64,000 nucleotides of DNA from Rebecca billardiae RCC1528. Its lineage: Eukaryota > Protista > Haptophyta. The notes under the pieces were generated by a model. The model ran no database searches, was not told where the DNA came from, and saw only the letters and a program-made list of their open reading frames with translations. Both the position numbers and the translations under genes were made by a program. Location of the stretch: positions 372,001 to 436,000 of the forward strand of contig OZ251236.1 of NCBI GenBank assembly GCA_965240325.2, written 5' to 3'. Positions 70 through 28,280 of this stretch are shown here, piece after piece; the first letter of the stretch is position 1, and the number at the start of each line of letters is the position of its first letter.

Positions 70-3000
70 ATGTTCACCGCGCGGCGGCCGCCTTCGACGC
101 CCGGAGGCGCAGCCGCCCGCTGGCTCATGCCGGCGCGGGCGCATCTGGGCGCCATGCTCATCGTCGCGCTGCTGCTCGGCTGCGCCGGCGCCAACTTGCC
201 CGGCCGCCGGCGTTTCGCGCTGTCTGCCGACGAGCTGCGCGGCTCGTGCGACGCTCGCGGCGGCGCGCGCGCGCGCTCGTACGCGCCGCGCGGCGCGACG
301 AGCTGCGCGGCGGCGGCCGTGATGGCGGCCTCCGCGCTGATCGGCGCCGCGGCTCTCGCCGCGCGCGGCCGCGAGCGTGCCCATGAGCGCCGCGCCGCGC
401 GCGCGGGCGCTGAGGCCGCCGTGCGATGCGCGCAGCTGCGGTGGCGCGCGCGCCGCGCGCGCCGGCTGCAGGTGCAGGCGTTGTGGCACGGCGTACGCAC
501 GCGGCTCGGCGCGGACGGGGCGCTCCTGTCGCCGGGCCCGTCGTCGCGGCCGAGCGTCGCCGCCGTCCTCGACGCGGCGCGCGCGCGCGCCACGGCCGCG
601 GACGAGTCAGCAGCGCGCGCGGCCGAGCGGTCGCGCGCCGACGCGGCGCGCGCCGACGCGGCCACGTCCGCCCTCGCGCGCAGCGAGGAGGAGCTGGCGC
701 GCGCGGGCTCGGCGCGCGTCGCGGCGGAGGCGGCGCTCGGCTCGGCGCGTGACGAGCTCCGCCGCGCCTCCGCCGCGCACGCCGCGCTCGGCGCCGCGCT
801 CGCCGATGCGGACGCGGACGTGACGCGCGCGGCCGTGGCCGCGGCGGAGCGACGCGCGGCCGCGGCTGCGCGCGGACGCGCGCTCGTGGCGGCGCGCGCG
901 CGCGTGGGCCGCGAGCTGCGCGCGCTGCGCTCGGGGCTGGGCGCTCTGCGCGCGGACGCGCGCGCCGCGCTGCACGCCGCGCACACCGACACCGCCACCG
1001 GGCACGATAGCTTACTTGCCGGCGCCGCGGCCGTGTGCGCGCGGAACGAGGCGGCTGCGGACGCGGCGCGCGCCGCGCTCGCGCGCGAGGCCGCGGCGGC
1101 GTCGGACGAGGGCGCGTGCGCGCGCGCGCGCGTGCTCGTGCTGCAGGCCGCGCTGCGCGACGACGACACCGCGCGCACCCTCGCGCGCTGGGCGCAGCCG
1201 CCCGCGCGCACCGCCGCCGGCCCCGCGCGCCGCGCATCGCTCGATCCTGCGTGGGTTGTTGGTGCGGCCGAGCGCGCGCGGCGGGAACGGCTGAGCGCCA
1301 AGGCGGTGGCGGGCGTGGCGGGCGGCGCGGGCGCGGGCGCGGGCAAGCCGGGCGCGCGCCCGCGCGCCTCGCTGCCCAACGACTCCGCCAGCGAGTCCGA
1401 CTCAGTCCGGTCCTTCTCCTCGGTCTCGTCGGCGCCGCGCGCCGCCGGCCGGCGCCGGCTGAGCGCTCGCCTTGAAATGCTGTCGCAGCCGAAGGGTGCG
1501 ATTCCGCCGAAGGAGCACGGCGGCGGGAGCGGCGCGGCGGGCGCGGGGGCGAAGGGGACGGGTGGGAAGGCCGCCGCCGCCGCAGCAGCCGCGCGCGCCG
1601 CCGGCCTCGCGCGCCGCAGCTCGGCGAGCGCAGCGCCCGCGCCGGGCGCGCGCGGCGACGGCGGCGGCGGCGGCGGCGGCGGCAGTGGCGGCGCGCGCCG
1701 CGCGAGCGGCGGCGATGGCGGCGGTGGCATCGGCGCGGGCGCGGCGGCGGCGGCGGCCGTGTTCTGCGGCGGTGGCACCGGCGGGCCGCCGCGGAGCGCC
1801 GCCGCCTCGCCGAGCACGCCCGGCACCGCGCCGGACTTCTGCTCTGCCGCGGGCGGCAGCAGCCGCGCGGGCGACGGCGGCAGCCGCGCGGGCGACGGCG
1901 GCAGCCGCGCGGGCGACGGCGGCAGCCGCGCGGGCGACGGCAGCAGCCGCGCGTCGCTCGGCTCAGTCGGCTCCGGTGGCGCGGCGGAGGAGGCGGAGCT
2001 GCAGCAGGCGCAGGCGGCGCACGGGGTGCTTGGCACGCCGCCACACCGGCCGCGCCAGCGCGTGGCGGAGCCCGACGACCTCTCGCCCGCGCGGTCGCCC
2101 GCCCGGCCCGGCGCGCGCTCCGAGGTGGCTGTCGTGACGCCGGCCGTGACGCCGGCTGTTACACCGGCCGTTACGCCGGCCGTGACGCTGGCCGTGACGG
2201 CGGCAGCCAACGGCGTGAGGCATAGCGTGCCGAATGGCGGCATGGCCGCACCCGCCGCCGCGGAGCCCGGGGCACACGCGGGCGCCGACGCCGATGCTGA
2301 CGGTTGGGACCCTCGCGAGGCCGTGCGCACACTTGCGGCGGCGGCGAGCTCGCCGTCCGCGCGCGCGCCGCCGCGCGCCGCCGCGCGGGCCTTGGTGGGG
2401 GCAGAGGCGGGCGCGAGATGGCAGCCTCCGCGCGCGGAGGCGGGCGTGGGGGCGCCGCCTGCGCGCGCGGATGCCGAGCTGGCGGACTTTTTGCAGGCGG
2501 AGGCGGAGGCGGCGGCTGGCGGCGCCGGCGGCGGGGACGGCGCGGCCGGGTGCAACGCGCCGCAGTGGGCGCGCGCGCTCGCTCACGGCTGGGCGCAGCC
2601 GGCGGCGCCGCCGGCGCCGCTCGGCGCGCCCCGAGCGGATCCGTACACGCTTCTGGGCAGCGGCGCGTGCATGCCGTCCTCGTCGTACGAGCCGTTCACC
2701 GGCTTCGAGCGCCCGCCCTGTCTCTCGCCGCCGCCGCCGCGCTCGCCGCCCACATTCGCGCACCTACTGCCCACCGCCGTCGCGCCGCCGCGCTCACCGC
2801 GTTCGGCGGCGGCGGCGGCGGCACTGGCGCTGTTGCTCGACTCGGGCGCGGCCTCGCCGCACGTGTTCGCGGACGCGGGCGAGCACCTGCCGCTCGACGA
2901 CGGCGAGGAGGAGGACGAGCACGCCGCGCGGGCGGACGACGCTTCGCTCCGCAGCCCTTACCAGCCCTATCGCGCCTCGCCGCCGTCCGCGCCGTCCGCG

Positions 3001-6000
3001 CGCGCCGCGCGCGCCGCCGCGCCGCTCGCGCGCGCCGCGCGCGGAGGCGACGGCGGCGGTTGCGGCGGCGGCGGCGGCGGCGAAGCGGCGGCCGGCAGCG
3101 CCGGTCCGTCGCAGCCCTCGGCGCCTGCGGCCAACGGGGAGCCCGGCGCACCGCCGGGCACCGCCCGCACGCCGCGCGCTGCCGCGCCCGCCGCTGCCGC
3201 CCACGCGCGGGGCGCCACGGGCGCTCACGGTCTGGCCATCGCGGCCGCCCCGGCGCGCGCGGCCGAGCCCGCGCGCGCCGCCGGGTCACAGCGCGCCGCC
3301 GACGCCGCGCCCGCTGCCGAGCCCGAGCAGGAGGAGCGGTTCGACGACGCCGTCGATGACGTCGCGTCTGCGCTGGCCGCGTTGGCTCTCTCGGCACAGC
3401 CGCCGGGCGGCGGCGGCGGCGGCGGCGGCGGCTCGCCGCGCGCCGTTGCCGCCGCTGCCGGCGGCGGCGGCGCTGGGCCACCGCCCGCCGCCGCCTCGCC
3501 GCGCGCGGCGCTGTGTGGTCTGTTGGCGCGGCCGAGCGGCGGCGCCGACGCCCATGCCGCCCGTGTCGGCACTGCCGCGCCCGCTGCGCATGCGCAGCGC
3601 GCGCCGCCCCTTCCGGCCGCGGAGCCCATGGCTGCTCAGCTGCCGACAGGAGTTTCGGCCGCGCCGCCCGCCGCCGCGCCCGCCGCCGCGCCCGCCGCCG
3701 CGCCCGCCGCCGAGCGGACGGTCGGCGTGCGCGCCGTGCCGGCTGGGTCCGCGCCCGCGGCGGCGGTGCCACTGGCGGCGGCGAGCGCAGCGCCAGCGGC
3801 CCACCGGCCCATCGCGCCGCCGCCCGCCGCCGCGCGAGCGGCGCCTGCGAGCGCCGCGCCCGCGCCCGCGCCGGGCGCCTTAGACCGCCCCGCCGAGTGC
3901 GCTGCGAGCGGCGGCGGCGGCGGCGGCAGCTGCGGCGGCGGCGGTGGCGGCGGCGGCGGTGGTGGCTGCGGCGGCGGCGACGGGGTGGCCATTCTCACGC
4001 CCTCCGCGCCCCTGCGCACGCCCTCGCCGGGGGAGGCTGGGCGGGAGGACGGGGCCCGCCCCCACCCAGCCTGCCCCGAGCCCTCCGCGCGAATTGGCAC
4101 GCCCTCGCCGCGCGCGGGCGCTCCCGGGCGGCACTCGGCGGTTGACGCCGCTATTGGCGGCGGCGTCGACGCTGACGAGTGCGCCCGCAGTGCAGAGGGG
4201 GCGTGCGCGGGCGCGGGGGCGCAGCCGCCGGCTGCTGCGGCGGCCGCGCGCGAGGCGGCGACGCCCGGCACACCGCCCACACCGTGCATGGCCCAATGCG
4301 TGGCCAACGCGGCCTCGGCGGGCGTCAGCGCGGCCGCGGCCGCGGCCGCGCGCGCGCACGGCGGCAACGCTCTGGTTGCGCCGGGCGGCGGCGGCCCGGA
4401 CGGGCACGTCTCCGCCGCGCACGAGGCTGCCGACGATCTGCCGCCCGACGACGGCGCCTCCTCCGCGCTGTCGTCGTCGTACGAGCCGTTCGGAGCGCTC
4501 TCCCCGCGTGGCCTCTCGTCCCCGCCGCCGCCGTTGCCGCCGCTGCCGCCGTCGGCGGCGTCGGACTATGGCGGCGGCGCGGCGCTCGCGGCGCGCGGCG
4601 CTGCTCAGCCGTCGCCCAGCGCGGCCGCCTCGCCGGGCGGGTGCGGCGGCGTGCGCGGCGAGTGCCGCTCTGCGCAGGCGGCGGCTCCGCCGCGCCTCGC
4701 CGCCGCCCCCGCCGCGCTCGGCGCCGGCTGCGCGCCGGCCGGCCCGGCCGCGCGGCCGCCGCCGCGCGGCCGCGCCGCCAGCCTCTCGCCGCCGCCGCCG
4801 CCCGCGCGGCCGCTGCCGCGCGGGTGGCACGCCATCTCGTTCGCCGACGGCACGCTCGCGTACGCGCGCGCGCACCCCGCCGCCGACGCCGCCGACGCCG
4901 ACTGCGCGCGCCCGCTCCTCGTGCGCGCGCGCCACCCGCTCGAGCGCGTATGCGTCGGCGAGGGCGAGGGCGGTCGCGGCTTGCTGTTCGAATGCGTGCA
5001 CTGCGAGGGTGGCGCGCTGGTCGGTGCGGGCGGCGAGGCGATCGAGGAGGGCGACGTGTACTGGCTGGACTCGCTCGAGCGCCTGCCGCGCGCCGCGCCG
5101 CCGCCGCCGCCCTCCGCGCTCGCAGCCGCCGCCGAGTGCGCGGCCGTCGCGAGCGCGCGCGCGGACGTTGTCGCGGCCGCGCGCGTCGCGCGCGCGTGCG
5201 ACGGCCTGGCGCTTGGGCACCACGTGGCGCGCGTGCTCGAGGCGGGCTCGGCGCTGCGCGCGTGGGCGACGGCGGCCGCCGCGCTCGGCGCGCGCGAGGC
5301 AGACGCGGCGCGCGCGCACCGCGCCGCCGCGCTGCGCCGCGGCGTGCGCGCGCTGCGGCCGAGCGCGCGCGCGCGCCGGCCGCTGCGCGCGCGCGCGCTC
5401 GCGGCCGCGGCCGCGGCCGCGCAGCGCCGGCGCGTGCTCGCGCTGTGCCGCGCGCTCGGCGCGTGGGCGGAGTGCGCGGCGGTGGCGGGCGCGGCGGCGG
5501 CGGCGCGCGCGCGCGCCGCGCCGCCCGCGCGCCGCGTGCTCGGCAGCGTCGGCGGCGGCGGCGCGGCCGGCGCCGCCGCTGGCGGCGGGCTCGGCGCCCG
5601 CGAGCGCGCGCGCGCCGCGCTCGCGGCCGCAAAGGGCGAGGGCGGCAGCGCCGCGCCCGCGCTGCCGTCGCTGTACGCCGCGCGGCGCGCGTCGGTCCTC
5701 GCGCTCGCCGAGAGCGCGCAGCGCGTGCGCAGCCTCGAGAAGAAGGCGGCGGGCGCGGCGAGCGCGGCGGACGCGCGCGTCGCGACGGCCGAGCGTCAGC
5801 TAGCGATGGCGGAGGCGCGCGCGGAGGAGCGCTCGAAGGCGCTGCTCTGCGCCTCCGCCGCGCAGCGCGCGCTGCGCCTCGCGCTGCGCGGCACGCGCGA
5901 CGCCGCGCGCGCGCACGAGCGCGCCGCCGCCGTGCGCGCGGGGGCGGTCCTGCTCGTGAGCACGCTGCCGCCGCCGGCGGGCGGCGCGGCGCGGCGCGCG

Positions 6001-20000: not shown

Positions 20001-20329
20001 TCGCTGCCGATCTGGATGGCGCAGGCGCTTCGAGGACGGCTAGACATATATATATTATGGCCCGCGGTGCAGGGCGGAGCGCGCAGCGTGGAGCCCGCAC
20101 CAGCGGGCCCGAACCACGTTTCAAAAAGATCTTTGATCAAGAAAAAAGGGACGGGGGGCGGCGGAAAAAAAGGGACGGGGGGCGATTTTTAGGGCTGGCG
20201 GAGACCGAGTTTCGAGTTTTTGAGATCGCATTGAGAGGTCTATCAGGCCAAAAAAAACCGCGCCCAGCTGATTCCCTTAAGTAAAGTGAGATCTGGACGT
20301 CAGCTGGACGTGACATTAGTGTAACGGTT

Positions 20330-21008
20330 TGTTGAGCTGACGCAGCCTGGGGCGCGCATCTCAGCAGATGGCGTCGCCGCTGGGACGTCAGGGCCGGCGC
20401 CGCACCAGGCGGGCCGGCGGCATCAGCTACGGAGCAGTGGCTGGCTCTGGCGGCGCGCGCGCGCGGCGCGCGCGGCGGCAGGAGCGCGAGCGCAGCAGCG
20501 CTGGCGCGGATCGACGTGGACGCGGAGCGCGGACGCGGCAGCGCGGACGCGGAGCGACACGGACGCGGCGCGTGCGCGGGCGGTACGGCCCGGCGCAGCG
20601 CGGCACGGTGACGTCGCACGGGCGGTACGGCCCGGCGCAGCGCGGGCGTCATGCTGGTACACTGGATTTGTCCAAGGAAAGCAGGTGAGCAGCACCGGAC
20701 ATGGACGAGAAGCAGTGGTACAAAGTTGAGCGGCAACAGGACGGACGGTGCGATCGCCGATTGGCTGATCGCGGCAAAATCTGGGTAAGTCGGCACGGCG
20801 ATGATACTACCGCCCCGAGCCCAGGAGCGATCGGAGCTCGATCGCTGTTTTGGCCCGGCGCAAGAGCGCCGGAAATAAGGGCCAGGTTCAGAGGCTTGAG
20901 AGCTGATGAGATCGCGAGGCATGTGATCCTCGCGGTGGCGTCCGTCCTGTCGTGCGCGGTGAGCTTTTAGCAGGGCTCGAGACGCTCGGAGCTCGCGTTT
21001 ACCCAATA
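20330..21008 (+). repeat. 5' LTR of element 1 (679 bp)
   Basis: First 294 bp and last 52 bp match the 3' LTR. Confidence 0.9.
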
Positions 21009-23626
21009 TGCATGCAGCGATCGGGAGGGATCGTACGCGCGGCGCTTTCTCATCGATCGCGCCGATGGGCACGAGCGGCCGGATGCACGGCTCGGTCGAC
21101 GTGGGGATGCTCAACGACAAGGGCAATCAGCAGCGCTGGCTCGCGCAATCGGCGAGCAGGCTGGCGGCGCTTCCGGCGGGGCAAGGTGCTACGATGTCCG
21201 CACTGAACGGCATCATCGTGACGCACGGCCCGAACGCGGAGCACCGCATCAACACGCTCGAGGAGTACAACTCGACGTGGGAGACATTCAACCCATCCGC
21301 GGCGAAGATGATCAAGGTCAGTGCCGAGCGGATGGACCTGGCGCGTGAGAACTACGCGCTGCAGCAGCGGCTGCTCGATCATCGCCACGAGCACGAGCGC
21401 CGCGAGCACGCCGAGCGCCGGGCCGCGGCGGAACGCGCGGCGGCGGCGGCGGGGGCGAGGCAGGCGCCAAGCTACGCGCAGGCTGCCTCGGCGGGCGCGG
21501 GGAGTGGTTTAGCCACTCCGGGCGGCCCGACGGCGACCGGACCCGGTTCAGGTCCGGCGGCGGGCGGCGGATCCGGAATTTCTCCGGGTCCGGCGGCCGG
21601 CACACCCGGTCCGGGTGTGGGCACAGGCGGCGCGGCAGGTGCGCCGGCTGGGACTGACGGCGCGACGCCTGTGGGCGGCGCCGGCGTCGGCGCGGTGCCT
21701 ACGGGCGGCGCCGGCGGGATCGGTGGCGCGGCGCCCGCGGGCGGCGCTGCCGTGACGCTCGATCCGCGCGCGCGCGAGCTCTACCGCCGCGAGCGCGAGA
21801 CCGAGGAACAGATGTATGAGCGGCAGGCGAGCGAGCACGCCATGCTGGACATCAAGCTCCGACAGAGCGTGTTGGAGGCAGCGCCGGACGGCGACGAGGC
21901 GGACCCCGCCAAGTACGCCGGGGCGCAGTACGAGAAAGGGACGGCTTTCTTACGCACCGAGCTGCGGTCGTGGGTGACGGAGGCTGCGTGGCAGCACATC
22001 AACCGCCTCATGGAGACGCAGCCGGAGGTGCAGGAGGAGCGCGCGCGCCTGGGCGCACTTACGCCGGGGCGCGAGTTCCTGTACCTGTGGAAGGCGATCC
22101 TGCGCATGCGCAAGCCCGACGACATGCGGAAGTACATGTCGGTGCGGGCACGCTGGCATCGGACGGTCCTGCCGGACTGCGGCAAGGACGGCGTCGGCGC
22201 ACTCGAGCTCTTCCAGGTGCTACAGCACAACCACGTGCTGCTGCAGGAGCTGAGTGACGCAGCGCCAGCGGCGGAGATGCTTGCGCGGCTCATCGAGTTC
22301 ATTCCGCCGGTGGGCGCGGGCATCGAGATGCGGACGCGGTACGAGTCGAAGGACTACAGGACCGTGACGAACTTCGACGTGCAGGAGCTCGTGCACGAGC
22401 TCAACGGCAAGTTCGAGGACTGGGACTTCTCCAAGGGCAAGCGGGTTGACCGCGGCGGCCCTGGGCGCCCAGGGGCGGGTGGCCGCACGCCAGGAGGCGG
22501 CGGCGCTACCCGCGCGCACCCAATCGACGGGCTCCGCCTGGCGCAGGCGGCGGCGGCGTCGGCGGGTGGCGGCGGCGGCGACACGACGTCGCCGGCTGGC
22601 CGTGGTGGCGGCGGCGGAGGTCGTGGCGGTGGCGGCGGCGGCACTGGCCGCGGCGCCGGCCGCGGAGGCCAGGACGACTCCGACGACGCGCACGGGCCGC
22701 GCTGCTACAAGTGCGGCGCCGTGGGGCATATCAAGCGTTACTGCCCGCAGGTGACGCAGGCTGATCGCGACTCGAACGCTGGCGATGACGCGGCGTCGAC
22801 GCGGTCGGATCGCAGCCGTGGCTCACATCGGAGCGGCGGTGGCGGTGGCGGCGGCGGTGGCGGGGGCAGCACCCGCGCCGTGGTCGGTAATGGCAACGGC
22901 GGCGGCACGGTCCGCACGCAGGTCGCGTTCGCTCCCGAGCAGGGGGACGAGCCAGACGGCGCCGTTGGTGGCGACGGTGACGCTGACGCCGGAGACGGCG
23001 GCGGCGCCGGCGCCGGACTCGGCTTGGCGCCTATTGGCGCGGCTATCGGCGGCAGAGCGCAGCGCGACGAGGACATCGAGATCGTCGCGGCGCGGGCGGC
23101 CGAGGCACGCGTGGCGCCGCCGGAGGACAACACGCGGGCGTTGGTGTTTGACACTGGCGCACGGAAGAACATCGCCATGGCCGAGGATTTGACGAATCTT
23201 ACCCCGGTGGACGGCGCATGTCAGATCGAGTGGGGGAACGGTGCGCGGGAGCGGGTCACTCACCGCGGGACCCTGGTGGTCAAGCTTGCGGCGGACGATG
23301 ACAGCGACAAGGTCCTCACGCTCGAGATCGAGGCGTGGGCGTCGCGGCGCGTCACGGCGCCGCTGCTGTCGGTCGAGCACTGCGCGGACGCAGGCATCGA
23401 GTTCCACTACTCGCAGCGCGGCAACACTGCGGACTTTACGGCGCTGGGAGGCGGCGTCGTGCAGCTGCCGCGCGATTCCACGCTGCGCGCCGAGATCGTA
23501 CGGCGCCAGGTGGGGCCGGACGTCGGCGATGCGCCGGCGGAGGCGCGCGCACGGCGCAGGGCGCCAGTGCGGCGCGTGGGCGCGGGGCGGGGGCGCGTTG
23601 GCGCTGCGCCGCCCCCAAACGCCTAA
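21008..23626 (+). CDS. gag: Gag-protease ORF1 of element 1 (start may be the ATG at 21193)
   Basis: Zinc knuckle CYKCGAVGHIKRYC; aspartic protease motif LVFDTGA...PLLSV. Confidence 0.9.
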   Translation: MHAAIGRDRTRGAFSSIAPMGTSGRMHGSVDVGMLNDKGNQQRWLAQSASRLAALPAGQGATMSALNGIIVTHGPNAEHRINTLEEYNSTWETFNPSAAKMIKVSAERMDLARENYALQQRLLDHRHEHERREHAERRAAAERAAAAAGARQAPSYAQAASAGAGSGLATPGGPTATGPGSGPAAGGGSGISPGPAAGTPGPGVGTGGAAGAPAGTDGATPVGGAGVGAVPTGGAGGIGGAAPAGGAAVTLDPRARELYRRERETEEQMYERQASEHAMLDIKLRQSVLEAAPDGDEADPAKYAGAQYEKGTAFLRTELRSWVTEAAWQHINRLMETQPEVQEERARLGALTPGREFLYLWKAILRMRKPDDMRKYMSVRARWHRTVLPDCGKDGVGALELFQVLQHNHVLLQELSDAAPAAEMLARLIEFIPPVGAGIEMRTRYESKDYRTVTNFDVQELVHELNGKFEDWDFSKGKRVDRGGPGRPGAGGRTPGGGGATRAHPIDGLRLAQAAAASAGGGGGDTTSPAGRGGGGGGRGGGGGGTGRGAGRGGQDDSDDAHGPRCYKCGAVGHIKRYCPQVTQADRDSNAGDDAASTRSDRSRGSHRSGGGGGGGGGGGSTRAVVGNGNGGGTVRTQVAFAPEQGDEPDGAVGGDGDADAGDGGGAGAGLGLAPIGAAIGGRAQRDEDIEIVAARAAEARVAPPEDNTRALVFDTGARKNIAMAEDLTNLTPVDGACQIEWGNGARERVTHRGTLVVKLAADDDSDKVLTLEIEAWASRRVTAPLLSVEHCADAGIEFHYSQRGNTADFTALGGGVVQLPRDSTLRAEIVRRQVGPDVGDAPAEARARRRAPVRRVGAGRGRVGAAPPPNA

Positions 23627-26600
23627 GCCCGGAACCCGCGCAGGTGCGAGCCACAAACACAACCACTACGGTATCTGATACCACTACTACTACGGAGGCG
23701 GCGCGAGGCGCTGATCCGGCGTGGTTACGCACTTGGTCGGTTCGAACGGGCACCAATGACCAACGTCTACTCGAGCGCACGCGACGCGTGGCCGAGGGGA
23801 TGGAGGGGGCGAACGCGCGGCGTGAGCCGCTTGACGAGCAGTCGGCGGCGGGCATGACGCGGCGGTCGTTCGCGGACGCGATGCCGACGGCGCACTACCC
23901 TGGGCAGGTGACGCACGTCGACATCTTCTCTATGGCGCGGATCGACTTACCAGTTGGGGCCGATGGCGCACGTGGAGGGTATCCTCATGGGATCATATTC
24001 ATCGATGGGCATTCACGTCGATGGCAAGTGTACGCGCTACGCAGCTTGGATGACGCCGAGGTTGGTCGGGCATTCCGCTGGTACGCGCAGTTGCTTGGAA
24101 CAGGGGCCATGCACATGTCGCATTGGGTCCTGGCGTCGGGGTGTACTATGGCGCGACGCCATATTCACACCGACGGTGGCTCGACGTTGCTGAGTACGTA
24201 CGTCGAGGGTGAGCTGGCGAAGCTTGGGTTCTCGTCGACGGTCACGTCGGCGCCCGACTCGCCGAGCTCGAATGGCGTGGCGGAACGCGCTATCCGCACG
24301 CTGAAGTCGAGACTGCGCGCCACGGTCGTTGCGCGTGGAGTCTCGAGGGTCGATTGGCACTACGCGGCGTGGCACGCATGCGCGTCGCGCAATCGACTGG
24401 CGTCACGTGGTATCATTCGTGACGATGGAGACATTGAGTGGCTCACGCCGGATGAGCTGTTCTTTGGCAAACGTCCGACGTGGAAGCATCACGTGGCGTT
24501 TGGCGCGCGCTGCCGCGTGCTGATGCTGGGCGCACGGCGCAATGCATTGGGGCAGCTGAAGCAGCGCGCACTACCCGGACGTGTCTATCTCTGGGGTGGG
24601 CACGGCGTGCAGTGGCGCGGTACATGGCGCTACGTGCTTGGGTACGTATGTCGTTTAGACGACGGACGTCTCGTTCACTCACGTGATGTACGCATCGACG
24701 AGACCGACCTGGTCGAGGGGGGGCACTCGTCGCTGGGCGCACCTGACGGTGGCGCGTACGTGGGTGATGGTGACGGCGCCGCGGTAAGCGGCGGACATCG
24801 TCCAGTCGGCGGTGACGCCGACGGTGAGGACGAGGACGGCGACGGTGGCGAGACGCCAGCCGACGCCGGGAATGACGACGCGACAGAGTTCGACGTCGGG
24901 TACGACGACGACGCAGATGCGTCAACGTCGGGGCGCGGGCGCAGCAGCGTGGACGCGGGACAACGCGGGTGCAGCAGCGCGGGCGCACAGCCGTCGACGC
25001 CGACGCCGCAGGGCGGGCGTGGCGGGGCAGGCGCGTCGATGACGCAGCCGGGTCGGCAGGATCAGATACCGCCGACGGAATCACGGCGCGGGACCGCAGC
25101 AGATGCTGGCGGGCCGCCGCGCGGCGCAGACGGTGACGACGGCGTGATCGAGGACGCGCCGCCGCCCGGTCTGGATATGGGACACGATCCGCTTCGCAGG
25201 GATCGGACGTCGCGCCGACGGCCGCAGCTGCTTACTGCCGTCGTCAGCGCCGCGTCGGTGTTCCAGAAGATCAACGTGAAGGTGCCGACGAACTATCGCG
25301 AGGCGATGCGGTCGGCGGAGGCGCCCCAGTGGCAGGGCGCCATGCTCGAGCACTTGGAAGGTCACAAGTTGCTCGGCACCTCGGAGGAGGTGCTGGTTCC
25401 GGAGGGCACGCGGGTGTTGCCGAGCCAGTGGGTCTTTGACGTGAAGTCGAACCCGGAGGGCGAGGTGACGCGCTTCAAGGCGCGGTCGGTGCTACTGGGG
25501 AACCTACAGCGGCCGGGGATCGACTTTCAGGAGGTCTTTGCTCCGACGATCCGGCCGGAACAAGTGCGACTACTCGTGGCGATCGCCGCTCAGCAGGCTG
25601 GCGCGAGAGTTGACTTGGGTGCAGCGTCGGTTGCGGCGCTGGGCATACTGTCGAAGGGCGACGTCAAGGACGCGTACCTCAACTCGGAGTTGAAGCCGGA
25701 TGAGCGGCCTCTCTTCTCATTCCCGCCGGGCTACGTGCCGAGCACGCAGGCGCCGCCGGGGTACAAAGTCGTGGGCCGGAGCCTCAAGGCGTATCCGGGC
25801 CTACGCCAGTCTGGGCGCGCGTGGCATCGCACGCACCGCACCCAGCTGCTCGCGCGCGGCTTCTCGGAGTGTCCGAGTGCGCCGTGCATCTACGTCAAGG
25901 AGTCGGCGCCGGGCGAGTTCATCATCGCGGGCGGCTTTGTCGACGACTTGCTGTTTCTCAACCTGACGCGCGACGCGCGCGCGGTGGAGAAGCTGGCGGC
26001 TGACCTGAAGGAGCACTACGAGATCAAGCTGAGTGAGCGGCTCGATAAGTTCCTGGGCGCCGTGTTTGAAGTTCATGACGACGGCATCCTGATGCATCTG
26101 GGGCCGTACGTCGAGAGCGTGCTTCAGCGGTTCGGTTTGAACGCGAGCACGCCGGCGCGCACGCCGGAGCCGGCGGCGCGGGCGCAGCTGAGCGACGACG
26201 ACGAGGCGTTGCTGCAGCGCGCGGAGATTGAGAACTACCAGGCGATGGTGGGATGTCTCATGTTTGCGATGGTCACGGCGCGGCCGGACATCGCGCACGC
26301 GGTGAACATGCTGACGCGACGCATGTCATGTCCGCGGGCGGTGGATCTGGTAAGTGCGAAGCGTGTGCTGCGCTACTTACGTGGATGCCCGCGATTGGGA
26401 ATCTTGTTCAAGTTTGCAACAGATTCCGAGCACCCCGACCTACTTGCTTTCGCTGACTCCGATTGGGCAAGCAATCCGGTGGAGACCAAGGGCAGGTCGA
26501 CGGGTGGATACATTGTGTTCTACAATGGGGCGCCGGTGTCGTGGCACAGCGGGCTGCAAGGTACAGTCTCGCTGAGCTCGACGGAGGCGGAGTACGTCGC

Positions 26601-26928
26601 GCTGAGCGATTGCTGCCGCGAGGTGAGCTACTTGCGGAGCATACTCGAGTCCATGCGGCAGCCGCCGCGGGCCGCGACGGAGGTGCGAGAGGACAACAAA
26701 GGGGCTATCGACCTCGTAGAGAATCCTGTGCACCACAAGCGCTCGAAGCACATCGAGATCAAGCATCACTATGTGCGTGACGCGCAGGAGGGTGGCAAGG
26801 TGAAGGTGGTCAAGGTACACACCTCACTCAACCACTCTGACATCATGACGAAGGCGACGGACGGTGCGACGTTCAAGCGGCACGTCGACGCCATCATGGT
26901 GGAGCGACACCCGACGCGCGCGCGGTAA
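23614..26928 (+). CDS. pol: Pol ORF2 (integrase-RT-RNase H) of element 1, in the -1 frame relative to ORF1
   Basis: IN: HVDIF / HTDGGS / NGVAERAIRTL. RT: KARSV..GIDFQEVFAP, FVDDLL. RH: FADSDWA, STEAEY, KHIEIKHHYVRD. The frame is open from 23335. Confidence 0.93.
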   Translation, partial: PKRLSPEPAQVRATNTTTTVSDTTTTTEAARGADPAWLRTWSVRTGTNDQRLLERTRRVAEGMEGANARREPLDEQSAAGMTRRSFADAMPTAHYPGQVTHVDIFSMARIDLPVGADGARGGYPHGIIFIDGHSRRWQVYALRSLDDAEVGRAFRWYAQLLGTGAMHMSHWVLASGCTMARRHIHTDGGSTLLSTYVEGELAKLGFSSTVTSAPDSPSSNGVAERAIRTLKSRLRATVVARGVSRVDWHYAAWHACASRNRLASRGIIRDDGDIEWLTPDELFFGKRPTWKHHVAFGARCRVLMLGARRNALGQLKQRALPGRVYLWGGHGVQWRGTWRYVLGYVCRLDDGRLVHSRDVRIDETDLVEGGHSSLGAPDGGAYVGDGDGAAVSGGHRPVGGDADGEDEDGDGGETPADAGNDDATEFDVGYDDDADASTSGRGRSSVDAGQRGCSSAGAQPSTPTPQGGRGGAGASMTQPGRQDQIPPTESRRGTAADAGGPPRGADGDDGVIEDAPPPGLDMGHDPLRRDRTSRRRPQLLTAVVSAASVFQKINVKVPTNYREAMRSAEAPQWQGAMLEHLEGHKLLGTSEEVLVPEGTRVLPSQWVFDVKSNPEGEVTRFKARSVLLGNLQRPGIDFQEVFAPTIRPEQVRLLVAIAAQQAGARVDLGAASVAALGILSKGDVKDAYLNSELKPDERPLFSFPPGYVPSTQAPPGYKVVGRSLKAYPGLRQSGRAWHRTHRTQLLARGFSECPSAPCIYVKESAPGEFIIAGGFVDDLLFLNLTRDARAVEKLAADLKEHYEIKLSERLDKFLGAVFEVHDDGILMHLGPYVESVLQRFGLNASTPARTPEPAARAQLSDDDEALLQRAEIENYQAMVGCLMFAMVTARPDIAHAVNMLTRRMSCPRAVDLVSAKRVLRYLRGCPRLGILFKFATDSEHPDLLAFADSDWASNPVETKGRSTGGYIVFYNGAPVSWHSGLQGTVSLSSTEAEYVALSDCCREVSYLRSILESMRQPPRAATEVREDNKGAIDLVENPVHHKRSKHIEIKHHYVRDAQEGGKVKVVKVHTSLNHSDIMTKATDGATFKRHVDAIMVERHPTRAR

Positions 26929-26964
26929 ACGGCGCAGCTCGCGGCTATGGCTGTCGAGGGGGGG

Positions 26965-27658
26965 TGTTGAGCTGACGCAGCCTGGGGCGCGCATCTCAGC
27001 AGATGGCGTCGCCGCTGGGACGTCAGGGCCGGCGCCGCACCAGGCGGGCCGGCGGCATCAGCTACGGAGCAGTGGCTGGCTCTGGCGGCGCGCGCGCGCG
27101 GCGCGCGCGGCGGCAGGAGCGCGAGCGCAGCAGCGCTGGCGCGGATCGACGTGGACGCGGAGCGCGGACGCGGCAGCGCGGACGCGGAGCGACACGGACG
27201 CGGCGCGTGCGCGGGCGGTACGGCCCGGCGCAGCGCGGCACGGTGACGTCGCACGGGCATGGCCCGGCCGCCATCGTGGAAGCGTGTTGGAGTTCTCGAG
27301 AACGCAAACACGACCGTTTCATCCAGAAATTCATCACGGACGAGGACGTCCGGATTCAACGGGTACACGGATCCAGAAACCGTGTGCGACCAGCAGTTAC
27401 GGCGGTGCGTCGGGAACACCTGTGATTGGTTGACGCACGGGGCGTGCGGCTCGGAATCATTGAGATTCCCCGAGCCGGGCCAGCAAACGCCGGGTCACCC
27501 CGCCGGAGCCGAAAAGAGCTCGGCGGGAGGTTAGCTTCGCTCGTCAGAGGAGCGAGGGTCGAGATTGCCTTCGTGGGCGTCACCGACGACGCGCCCGAGG
27601 ACGTGCCGGTGAGCTCTTAGCAGGGCTCGAGACGCTCGGAGCTCGCGTTTACCCAATA
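26965..27658 (+). repeat. 3' LTR of element 1 (694 bp)
   Basis: Follows the PPT and ends ACCCAATA before the TSD. Confidence 0.9.
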
Positions 27659-28280
27659 CGGTTCGTTACGAGCGAATCGTACTCGTCTTCCCGGATCGCG
27701 TGACGTCCGGACTGGGCCACATCCGGATCGTCGGAGGTGACGTGCCCCGGCACGATGGGCGATGGCGGATATGCGGGACGGCGGCCTGCACGTGCCTCCG
27801 GACCCGCCTCCCGCTTGCTGCTCACGCAGTCAGCTGCGACCGTGGCGCATGATCGCAGAAGCAGTGCCGGCAGTACGGCCTGCATCAGCTAGTGCCGCGC
27901 CGTCGTGGCGCGCGCGGTACGGTTGCGCGTTTGCAGCGCGGCTCGCCGCTCGGCGTAACGGCACGCGCGTGCGGCTCAGGTGTGTCAAATGCGGTCTCGT
28001 CGGCGCGCTTTCGCCTGCCACCTCGTGCACCCGTGCCGCCAGTTTCATCGTCTTCATGAGGACTGCTGCTGCTGTCGCCATCCGCTCTCCATCACCCCGA
28101 GTCGCCGGTCGCGCGGCGCGCGCGGTAGGCACTAGGCAGGGCGTACGGTCACTCACCCGTGCAACGGGTCAAGTGGCCAGAGTACGTCTGGTCGTTGGCT
28201 GGCACGGGCCGCAGCGCTAAAGCACCCTGCTGTCACACCCGACTCCTTCAGTACTCCGAGCTCCGCGGCACGACTCACTC

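Follow-up and report, generated by a model that had tools for sequence, protein, structure and literature searches.

In yeast, ectopic conversion of Ty elements and their LTRs, by genomic copies as well as by cDNA, is established: a short tract is copied without exchange of the flanks and the target-site duplication (TSD) is retained. In tobacco, the subfamilies Tnt1A, Tnt1B and Tnt1C differ in the U3 regulatory region, which is located between conserved LTR ends. Recombination is also documented during the reverse transcription of LTR retrotransposons (PMC5668417, PMC6894440, PMC1950507), i.e. recombinants arise by template switching, as described for ONSEN in Arabidopsis (PMC5668417), in a review (PMC6894440) and for complex elements of the Triticeae (PMC1950507). 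In rice, RIRE2 and Dasheng constitute an autonomous/non-autonomous pair with chimeras (Jiang et al. 2002, as cited in PMC5473765), and in HIV-1 proviruses LTRs that are asymmetric at birth have been ascribed to reverse-transcription events in particles with two genomes, involving plus-strand strong-stop DNA (PMC9278108).

Here we analyse a window of 64,000 nucleotides (the whole stretch of DNA, to which all coordinates refer) that contains an LTR retrotransposon of a coding family, B, one LTR of which very probably carries a one-off patch from a related protein-less family, S. As in the ONSEN and Triticeae recombinants, two related, co-active elements would supply the segments, and the junctions are located at short or long homologies. 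Those recombinants, however, are described with two identical final LTRs, whereas here only the 5' LTR is a mosaic; moreover, the partners are an autonomous and a diverged non-autonomous element with unalignable cores, and one junction is non-homologous and bears a 42-bp duplication. With the asymmetric LTRs of HIV-1 the locus shares unequal LTRs inside a normal integration, but what is mostly seen in HIV-1 is a deletion affecting the 3' LTR (PMC9278108), whereas we find a heterologous replacement of 357 nt in the 5' LTR of an algal copia element. As in conversion of Ty elements, a tract has been copied, the flanks are unexchanged and the TSD is kept; classical conversion, however, has homology on both sides, whereas the left side here consists of a 9-nt microhomology plus a duplication. 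Like those of Tnt1A, Tnt1B and Tnt1C, the LTRs of families B, C, D and S have conserved ends and distinct cores with likely promoter motifs, the latter judged here from sequence alone. Finally, as far as RIRE2 and Dasheng are portrayed in the citing source, the protein-less partner shares LTR ends and polypurine tract (PPT) with the autonomous one, outnumbers it and forms chimeras with it, as S does with B; the partnership of B and S is, however, deduced purely from their sequences and their primer-site palindromes differ (TGCGCGCA in S vs TGCATGCA in B).

Results and discussion

An intact copia element of family B

The locus is evidently an intact, very young, autonomous Ty1/copia element of about 6.6 kb, belonging to family B, in a very GC-rich alga. 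Apart from the 5' LTR, it comprises:

21008 to 23626, + strand: gag-protease ORF, 872 aa, containing a zf-CCHC knuckle and the protease motif DTGA
21009 to 21016, + strand: 8-nt palindrome TGCATGCA where a primer-binding site would be expected (from the sequence)
23335 to 26928, + strand: pol ORF, 1197 aa, -1 frame, with a copia-type RT (RVT_2) preceded by a weak match to an integrase core
26956 to 26964, + strand: PPT GAGGGGGGG, adjoining the 3' LTR (from the sequence; identical tract in S elements)
26965 to 27658, + strand: 3' LTR, 694 bp, of the ordinary B-family type (match to other B LTRs)

The gag ATG at 21008 is made up of the final LTR base and TG. Pfam finds zf-CCHC in ORF1, near the end of which the DTGA motif is placed, and RVT_2 (PF07727, E = 3.7e-33) at aa 686-944 of the ORF 23335-26928; N-terminal to the RT there is only a weak rve_3 match (aa 304-346), which with E = 0.014 is below the Pfam cut-off. 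The order gag - protease - integrase - RT is consistent with copia, the integrase match being weak. Over its full length the 3' LTR is 97-100% identical to about 20 other LTRs, most of which are paired at a distance of ~6650 bp, and in the leader (20958-22508) the identity to B copies amounts to 97.7-99.8%. The U5 end and the palindrome of the element are B-type as well.

A mosaic LTR pair within one target-site duplication

The 5' LTR differs from its 3' counterpart and is enclosed with it by a 5-bp duplication:

20325 to 20329, + strand: left TSD copy CGGTT (from the sequence; one CGGTT only at the empty-site paralogue in L045)
20330 to 21008, + strand: 5' LTR, 679 bp, a B-S-B chimera (alignment; TGTTG...CAATA)
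27659 to 27663, + strand: right TSD copy CGGTT (from the sequence; comparison with the empty-site paralogue)

The original prediction, i.e. a mosaic LTR pair with equal ends, different cores and a CGGTT TSD, was reproduced by repeat finding and alignment. Both methods show positions 20330-20623 and 26965-27258 to be 100% identical over 294 nt, and in the pairwise alignment the last 52 bp (20957-21008 vs 27607-27658) contain one mismatch (20966 T / 27616 C). The cores are unalignable beyond scattered islands, with a global alignment score of z = 2.5 vs shuffles; the islands common to both cores (ATTGG, CCCCGAGCC, AAGAGC and TCAGAGG) follow one another collinearly and at similar distances. The LTRs begin with TGTTG and finish with CAATA, i.e. 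their termini are TG...TA rather than the usual TG...CA.

When fused with a single CGGTT, the flanks are 98.4% identical over 571 nt, end to end, to an uninterrupted host-repeat paralogue in L045. As this empty site carries one CGGTT, the duplication is genuine, and the earlier argument that an intact TSD speaks against recombination of separate insertions is upheld. A crossover between separate insertions was rejected, since the flanks match the empty paralogue and internally the element is of the B type to either side of the patch. The flanking host repeat is very abundant (1083 first-look candidates with 98-100% identity). One S element is inserted elsewhere in the same host repeat, L051 and L045 run uninterrupted across the CGGTT site, and in these copies there is no sign of insertion targeting of exactly this site.

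Junctions of the 5' LTR

The 5' LTR can be divided into the following segments:

20330 to 20623, + strand: B-type left part (100% to the 3' LTR)
20624 to 20645, + strand: 22-nt re-copy of 20582-20603 (repeat finding; the back-jump shares CGGGC)
20637 to 20993, + strand: S-identical tract, 357 nt (100% to 25 of 29 S LTRs)
20957 to 20993, + strand: 37-nt block common to B and S, place of return to B (alignment)
20994 to 21008, + strand: B-specific 5' LTR end CGCGTTTACCCAATA, the S counterpart being TGCGGTAATCCCAATA (alignment)

The left junction is located at the edge of a degenerate CGCGGA-type repeat with 83% GC (LTR positions 111-294). The 22-nt re-copy results in a 42-bp tandem duplication at this breakpoint (20574-20603 plus 20616-20645), which the original prediction had missed, and positions 20637-20645 (GCAGCGCGG) constitute a 9-nt microhomology to the (GGAGCAGCGC)n array of the S LTR. 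On the right, the tract ends within the 37-nt identical block; if the T at 20966 is S-derived, the return switch would fall in 20967-20993, and once this position is counted within the tract the LTRs have zero differences outside it.

Around the left border, i.e. upstream of the core, B and S are ~76% identical with indels, which is at odds with ordinary homologous conversion; the homology at both borders that marks classical ectopic gene conversion is evidently lacking on this side. The combination of microhomology and local duplication rather is a signature of copy-choice. As read from the order of its segments, the patch is the product of three template switches: at the shared CGGGC a polymerase first stepped back along B by 42 nt, then moved from B to S at the microhomology, and finally from S to B inside the 37-nt common block. 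The locus marks the GC-rich repeat that immediately precedes the LTR core as a hot spot of template switching.

Both strings spanning the left junction are single-copy in the 72-Mb assembly, even at up to 2 mismatches, and no other full-length copy of the chimeric 5' LTR is present there. A hidden subfamily with chimeric LTRs as parent was discarded on account of this uniqueness with 2 mismatches tolerated. Metagenome scans for the chimeric junction and for a control string from the S core gave no match, but they carry no weight, being made in a collection devoid of the repeats of this organism. An assembly or polishing artefact, i.e. a chimeric LTR that is absent from the organism, is improbable. 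The related LTR L051 has a run of 100 N, which may be a scaffold gap, in its (CG)n region, so that GC-rich DNA of this kind may be hard to assemble. A mis-join in a graph or by overlap, however, would need more than the 9 nt shared at the left junction, which moreover bears a novel 42-bp duplication; B resumes at the homologous position once exactly 357 nt have passed, the window is free of N and other B LTRs are unaffected.

The core of the 357-nt tract is a putative promoter region, as the tract contains an inverted CCAAT (ATTGG) and the A/T-rich AAATAA. In a motif scan of the LTR these two were found and TGTAA and AATAAA were absent; the positions of the motifs are insufficient for locating the start of transcription or the site of polyadenylation in the LTR.

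The non-autonomous donor family S

The donor of the 5' core is evidently an LTR of S, a related, internally deleted, non-autonomous family of ~4 kb, at least 39 LTRs of which match the tract at 99%. The ORFs of S yielded no Pfam domain matches, and its coding remnants comprise no more than fragments of pol and of gag (aa 14-137). The S leader is ~70% identical to that of B, the PPT is identical and the LTR ends are common to both families; beyond these common end blocks the similarity of the S LTR to the B LTR is a mere ~76-83%. All these features characterise S as a protein-less (Dasheng-/LARD-like) derivative whose LTRs, leader and PPT are related to those of a coding partner.

Both families include LTR pairs at 100% identity and were thus active at the same time. 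From the shared ends and the past exchange we infer that S may be trans-mobilised by B proteins and that RNAs of both families may be co-packaged. One S segment, matching 24632-25144, is 95-97% identical to B, the remaining S sequence being 70-84% identical, which points to an earlier B x S exchange. The locus supports sequence exchange between autonomous and non-autonomous elements, a route by which regulatory cores could be moved between families.

Symmetry of other LTR pairs

Apart from the pair in the window, which is the sole mosaic among 24, the LTRs of all 23 pairs that we compared by sequence are collinear. Moreover, judged by coordinates and identity pattern, and with D-type LTRs known from match coordinates alone, the two LTRs match each other in at least 43 further elements of types B, C, D and S. 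Exchange with a distant subfamily, by conversion or template switching, had been proposed initially and is borne out by the S donor with its 100% identity over 357 nt. The further proposal of a family-wide cassette, position-specific or reassorting, is largely refuted by the unique junctions, the 23 collinear pairs and the at least 43 symmetric elements; with matching pairs in the other copies examined the event is a one-off conversion in the terms of that prediction.

The LTR ends, which are 95-98% conserved among subfamilies with different cores, enclose far less conserved cores of at least four types (B, C, D and S). B and C, for instance, are 98% identical over the first 318 nt and 97-98.6% in the internal sequence, and their cores are unalignable over ~210 nt. 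As the subfamilies have different cores between conserved ends, core replacement has evidently recurred over evolutionary time. This diversity might suggest a programmed or recurrent promoter cassette, the cores being routinely swapped in order to diversify promoters or to evade silencing, but we consider this hardly credible, as all other elements examined have the same core in both LTRs and the junction is unique and untidy. Furthermore, in the established retroviral replication scheme progeny U3 is copied from the 3' LTR and U3 of the 5' LTR is not transmitted, so that a swap in the 5' LTR, contrary to what had been envisaged, is a poor route to promoter diversification. The subfamily pattern instead fits occasional heritable recombination, comparable to the Tnt1 U3 variants and to Dasheng/RIRE2 (PMC5473765). 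The finding amounts to one isolated copying accident, of a kind already known, and reveals neither a dedicated promoter-swapping or diversification system nor a new mechanism.

Timing of the patch

According to the standard scheme of reverse transcription the 5' LTR derives entirely from plus-strand strong-stop DNA. A late switch would therefore alter the 5' LTR alone and lead to unequal LTRs at integration and a normal TSD. We favour template switching late in reverse transcription, once the first LTR copy existed, in a particle containing B and S RNAs; the switches may have occurred during plus-strand strong-stop DNA synthesis or during minus-strand completion. That the 5' LTR is the affected one, as predicted, supports this timing, and LTRs without differences outside the tract leave little time for a later event.

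Several aspects weaken the timing. Repair synthesis with template switching yields the same types of junction, and under a repair model, too, the 5' LTR would be the one hit half the time. Three switches in one synthesis of 700 nt are many; clustered switching, though, does occur in retroviruses. Switching during plus-strand strong-stop synthesis would require the particle to contain a second minus-strand DNA, and switching is less frequent on DNA templates than on RNA templates. In addition, these elements have a palindrome apparently in place of a normal tRNA primer site, so that their replication scheme may depart from the textbook. One assembly does not date the patch relative to integration, and we place it in reverse transcription with a confidence that just about approaches an even chance. 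The same near-even standing applies to the whole statement, i.e. a young B insertion with an S patch that was acquired by late reverse-transcription switching.

Post-integration ectopic gene conversion or break repair is nearly as likely and, although falling short of an even chance, a serious possibility. A normal B pair would have integrated first, and a break in the 5' core would then have been mended by synthesis-dependent strand annealing with a genomic S LTR or free S cDNA as template, one end invading via the 37-nt block and the other being resolved by microhomology and a small duplication. The donor is abundant (at least 39 LTRs), its recent activity means that cDNA would be at hand, and the right junction is located in true homology; repair synthesis is known to show template switching and microhomology junctions. 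Yet the left side offers just 9 nt of microhomology, the undiverged LTRs outside the tract leave a short time window, and none of the at least 43 other elements is patched in either LTR. A two-step pathway, in which both LTRs became chimeric through a minus-strand switch and another B copy subsequently restored the B type of the 3' LTR by conversion, is very improbable: it starts from minus-strand copy-choice, the commonest kind of retroviral recombination (PMC6894440), but requires two rare events; for the back-conversion there would be just ~15-52 nt of right-side homology before the unique flank, and the chimeric LTR is found in no other copy.

With late reverse-transcription switching as the preferred reading, we tentatively suggest, at slightly less than even confidence, that the element was born with unequal LTRs, RT having moved, after the first LTR copy, to the template of a parasite in a co-packaged particle. 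If so, an autonomous element would have integrated with the LTR core of a parasite, and hence a likely promoter, in its 5' LTR, and the locus would capture, naturally and in the first generation, the repeated replacement of LTR cores in this clan as well as direct genomic evidence of B/S co-packaging and of LTR asymmetry at birth beyond retroviruses.

Whatever its timing, the locus is a nucleotide-exact case, with both parents in the genome, of a mosaic LTR that arose without exchange of flanking DNA. Dating by LTR divergence and pair-based annotation assume that LTRs are identical at birth; a pair like this one would be dated as ancient or be rejected, despite having no substitutions.

The Arg-rich ORF

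An Arg-rich ORF that starts in the constant part of the LTR and acquires two different C-termini had been proposed as well. The ORFs are present (20368-20688 and 27003-27425), but their interpretation as a gene was rejected: the Arg-rich ORF has no Pfam match, and the region is repeat DNA with 83% GC, in which each of the six frames contains long ORFs by chance. The matching region of the S LTR is an array of 10-nt repeats, the length of which differs by 10 or 40 nt within the LTR pair of one element and is thus incompatible with a coding role. Slippage in repeat number in this array takes place within S LTR pairs that are otherwise identical.

Two LTR families meet in a single insertion

The original prediction had described the element at 20330-27658 as having LTRs with matching ends and different middle parts, and repeat finding and alignment bear out this layout. 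The 5' LTR (20330-21008) and the 3' LTR (26965-27658) are identical over their first 294 nt (20330-20623 = 26965-27258, by both methods) and align with one mismatch at their right ends (20957-21008 and 27607-27658), whereas the 333-nt and 348-nt cores between these ends are unalignable in pairwise comparison apart from scattered islands, the global alignment score of core versus core lying only 2.5 SD over shuffles. As these islands (ATTGG, CCCCGAGCC, AAGAGC and TCAGAGG) occur in the same order and with similar spacing, we regard the cores as distant homologues.

The 3' LTR is of the type normal for the autonomous 6.6-kb family B. An assembly search gave ~20 LTRs with 97-100% identity along the full 694 nt, most of them paired at a spacing of ~6650 bp, plus solo LTRs and one LTR-LTR tandem. 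The full-length 5' LTR has no second copy in the assembly; its core matches, at 99%, at least 39 LTRs of a related family, S, whose LTR pairs are ~3.8-4.3 kb apart. S is non-autonomous, i.e. no Pfam domain was found in its internal ORFs and its coding remnants comprise only gag scraps (aa 14-137), the protease end and pieces of pol. The S leader is ~70% identical to that of B, the polypurine tract is the same and the palindrome next to the 5' LTR is related. The S segment equivalent to 24632-25144 is 95-97% identical to B, as compared to 70-84% for the remainder of S, which argues for an earlier sequence exchange between the two lineages, and the 100% identity within many S and many B LTR pairs points to recent activity of both families.

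CGGTT is present at each end of the element (20325-20329 and 27659-27663). An uninterrupted copy of the host repeat, located elsewhere in the assembly (L045), aligns end-to-end with the flanks joined via one CGGTT (98.4% over 571 nt), so that the element represents a single insertion flanked by a genuine 5-bp duplication, as had been proposed. The host repeat (20046-20329 plus 27664-27955) gave 1083 first-look candidates, the scored copies being 98-100% identical; several further insertions of B and S elements are located within or beside copies of this young, very abundant and very homogeneous repeat. The LTR termini are TG…TA (TGTTG…CAATA; 20330-20334 and 27654-27658) instead of the usual TG…CA in all copies seen of B, S and the B-related subfamily C.

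Between the LTRs, an ORF of 872 aa encodes a CCHC knuckle and a DTGA protease motif, and a second ORF of 1197 aa, in the -1 frame, contains a copia-type reverse transcriptase (RVT_2, E = 3.7e-33) and, upstream of it, a weak integrase-core match. The gag ATG straddles the LTR/internal border (21008) and the polypurine tract GAGGGGGGG abuts the 3' LTR. The element is apparently an intact Ty1/copia retrotransposon, in a window, G000:C19:372001-436000, with a GC range of 57-85%. In B elements the expected position of the tRNA primer site (21009-21016) is occupied by the palindrome TGCATGCA, and its S counterpart, TGCGCGCA (2208-2215 of L003, an S copy), has a different central tetranucleotide, a divergence that could restrict the formation of B/S heterodimers should the palindrome serve in RNA pairing.

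Anatomy of the chimeric 5' LTR

Features of the 5' LTR
up to 20623: B-type left part
20624-20645: re-copy of B 20582-20603, making a 42-bp tandem duplication
20637-20993 (357 nt): S-identical tract, 100% to 25 of the 29 S LTRs compared
20957-20993 (37 nt): block identical in B and S, site of return to B

At the back-jump the nascent end has CGGGC in common with the site upstream. The re-copy closes with 9 nt, GCAGCGCGG, that also terminate the (GGAGCAGCGC)n array of the S LTR, and S sequence follows thereafter. On the right, GTGCGCGG, directly upstream of the 37-nt block, is S-specific, and both CGCGTTTACCCAATA, from 20994 on, and the leader (97.7-99.8% to B copies) are B-specific. The lone LTR-LTR mismatch, T at 20966 versus C at 27616, falls on a position at which B itself is polymorphic; in every other element both LTRs agree there, and all S LTRs have T. 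This T probably arrived with the patch, which would place the right switch within 20967-20993 and leave zero LTR differences outside the patch. The sequence thus shows an exact S tract in a B LTR that is entered via a back-jump and a microhomology jump and left via a homologous return, which is polymerase copy-choice.

That the patch is a mis-assembly is very improbable: although a related LTR contains a run of 100 N, B and S have only 9 nt in common at the left junction, a novel duplication lies at this junction and the window is free of N. The run in question (L051 2074-2173, G000:C18) interrupts the (CG)n stretch in a 3' LTR, namely that of the B copy closest to the window's element, and represents a scaffold gap or else withheld sequence; in either case this GC-rich part of the LTR may be difficult to assemble.

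Origin of the patch

In the standard scheme one LTR copy is present on the minus strand and is copied by plus-strand strong-stop DNA, on which the 5' LTR is built (PMC6894440). A template switch to S late in reverse transcription, either onto S minus-strand DNA in plus-strand strong-stop synthesis or onto S plus-sense RNA or DNA while the minus strand is completed, would alter the 5' LTR only, and the element would then integrate normally. For the one-off S-to-B patch we tentatively favor such a late switch during reverse transcription, as the affected LTR is the 5' one, one of the two junctions is non-homologous and includes a duplication, post-insertion divergence is absent, S probably rides on B's machinery and has exchanged sequence with B before, and the left junction adjoins an 83% GC repeat, the equivalent S LTR region showing slippage. 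LTRs unequal at birth are documented in HIV-1 and have been explained along similar lines (PMC9278108). Break repair by synthesis-dependent annealing, with an S LTR or S cDNA as template, yields the same product as a late switch and is a serious, if somewhat less probable, alternative.

Ectopic conversion among Ty elements is one of the nearest known cases. The others are recombinant LTR retrotransposons arising from reverse transcription (PMC5668417, PMC6894440, PMC1950507), HIV-1 asymmetric LTRs (PMC9278108) and chimeras of autonomous and non-autonomous partners, e.g. RIRE2/Dasheng (cited in PMC5473765). The window's element is an unusually clean example of this known kind and no new system.

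Recurrence and consequences of the exchange

The asymmetric copy is unique. Even at a tolerance of up to 2 mismatches, neither left-junction string has a second occurrence in the 72-Mb assembly. Metagenome scans gave no match to the chimeric junction and likewise none to an S-core control string, so that this blank carries no weight. The sequences of 24 LTR pairs were compared, and in the 23 other than the window's the LTRs are collinear and 95.5-100% identical, with indels in the 10-nt repeat array of S as the sole differences. Judged by coordinates and identity pattern, symmetric pairs number 8 in B, 8 in C, at least 8 in D, a second B-related subfamily known from hit coordinates, and ~19 in S. 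B, C and D are 95-98% identical over the first ~318 nt of the LTR and have distinct cores, B and C being 97-98.6% identical internally. Such distinct cores between conserved LTR parts imply that cores were replaced several times in the history of the clan and then inherited. The proposed survey of core pairing in other copies therefore gave a divided answer: cores differ between subfamilies, but no second asymmetric pair was found among the copies compared.

The idea of a family-wide exchangeable promoter cassette is not supported. The core swap with a distant subfamily is real, given the exact S tract, but a swap in the 5' LTR alone does not by itself diversify the family promoter, since in the established replication scheme progeny take U3 from the 3' LTR; only the portion of the patch downstream of the transcription start could be heritable. 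Motif positions, an inverted CCAAT in the core and, in S, AAATAA ~110 nt further on, hint at a putative promoter inside the patch. The Arg-rich ORF with two C-termini was rejected as a gene. The ORFs match no Pfam family and lie in CG-repeat DNA in which chance ORFs are frequent (39 ORFs of at least 80 aa in 8 kb), and the S counterpart is the 10-nt repeat, without conservation and with a length that varies by 10 or 40 nt between the LTRs of single elements.

Further observations on B and S copies

The (GGAGCAGCGC)n array is highly variable in length among S LTRs and, in five elements that are otherwise near-identical, differs by 8 to 40 nt from one LTR to the other. The initial ~110 nt of the LTR are duplicated in S LTRs (e.g. 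L003 1382-2207 and L030 1096-2050), with the diverged duplicate at the very start. The internal region of S elements (L002 1-944) contains three progressively diverged tandem copies (96.7%, 87.5% and 75% identical) of the equivalent of window ~24930-25150, the integrase-RT linker; this array may be an amplified cis-acting signal or simply a repeat. One S LTR pair (L008/L009, G000:C31:922953-929755) is spaced 6073 bp apart versus the usual ~4 kb, and homology to the usual S/B leader ends ~22 nt past the 5' LTR, suggesting a nested insertion of ~2 kb. A B element on the minus strand (L033/L034/L036, G000:C21:1075971-1084005) has the order LTR - internal - LTR - LTR, the second LTR being joined head-to-tail without spacer (…CCCAATA directly followed by TGTTGAG…), as would be expected at the joint of a 2-LTR circle. 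Finally, the 3' LTR of another B copy (G000:C3) is interrupted by a ~910-bp element (L050 ~2090-3002) with the terminal inverted repeats GGCCTGTTTTATTTCTAC… and …GTAGAAATAAAACAGGCC.
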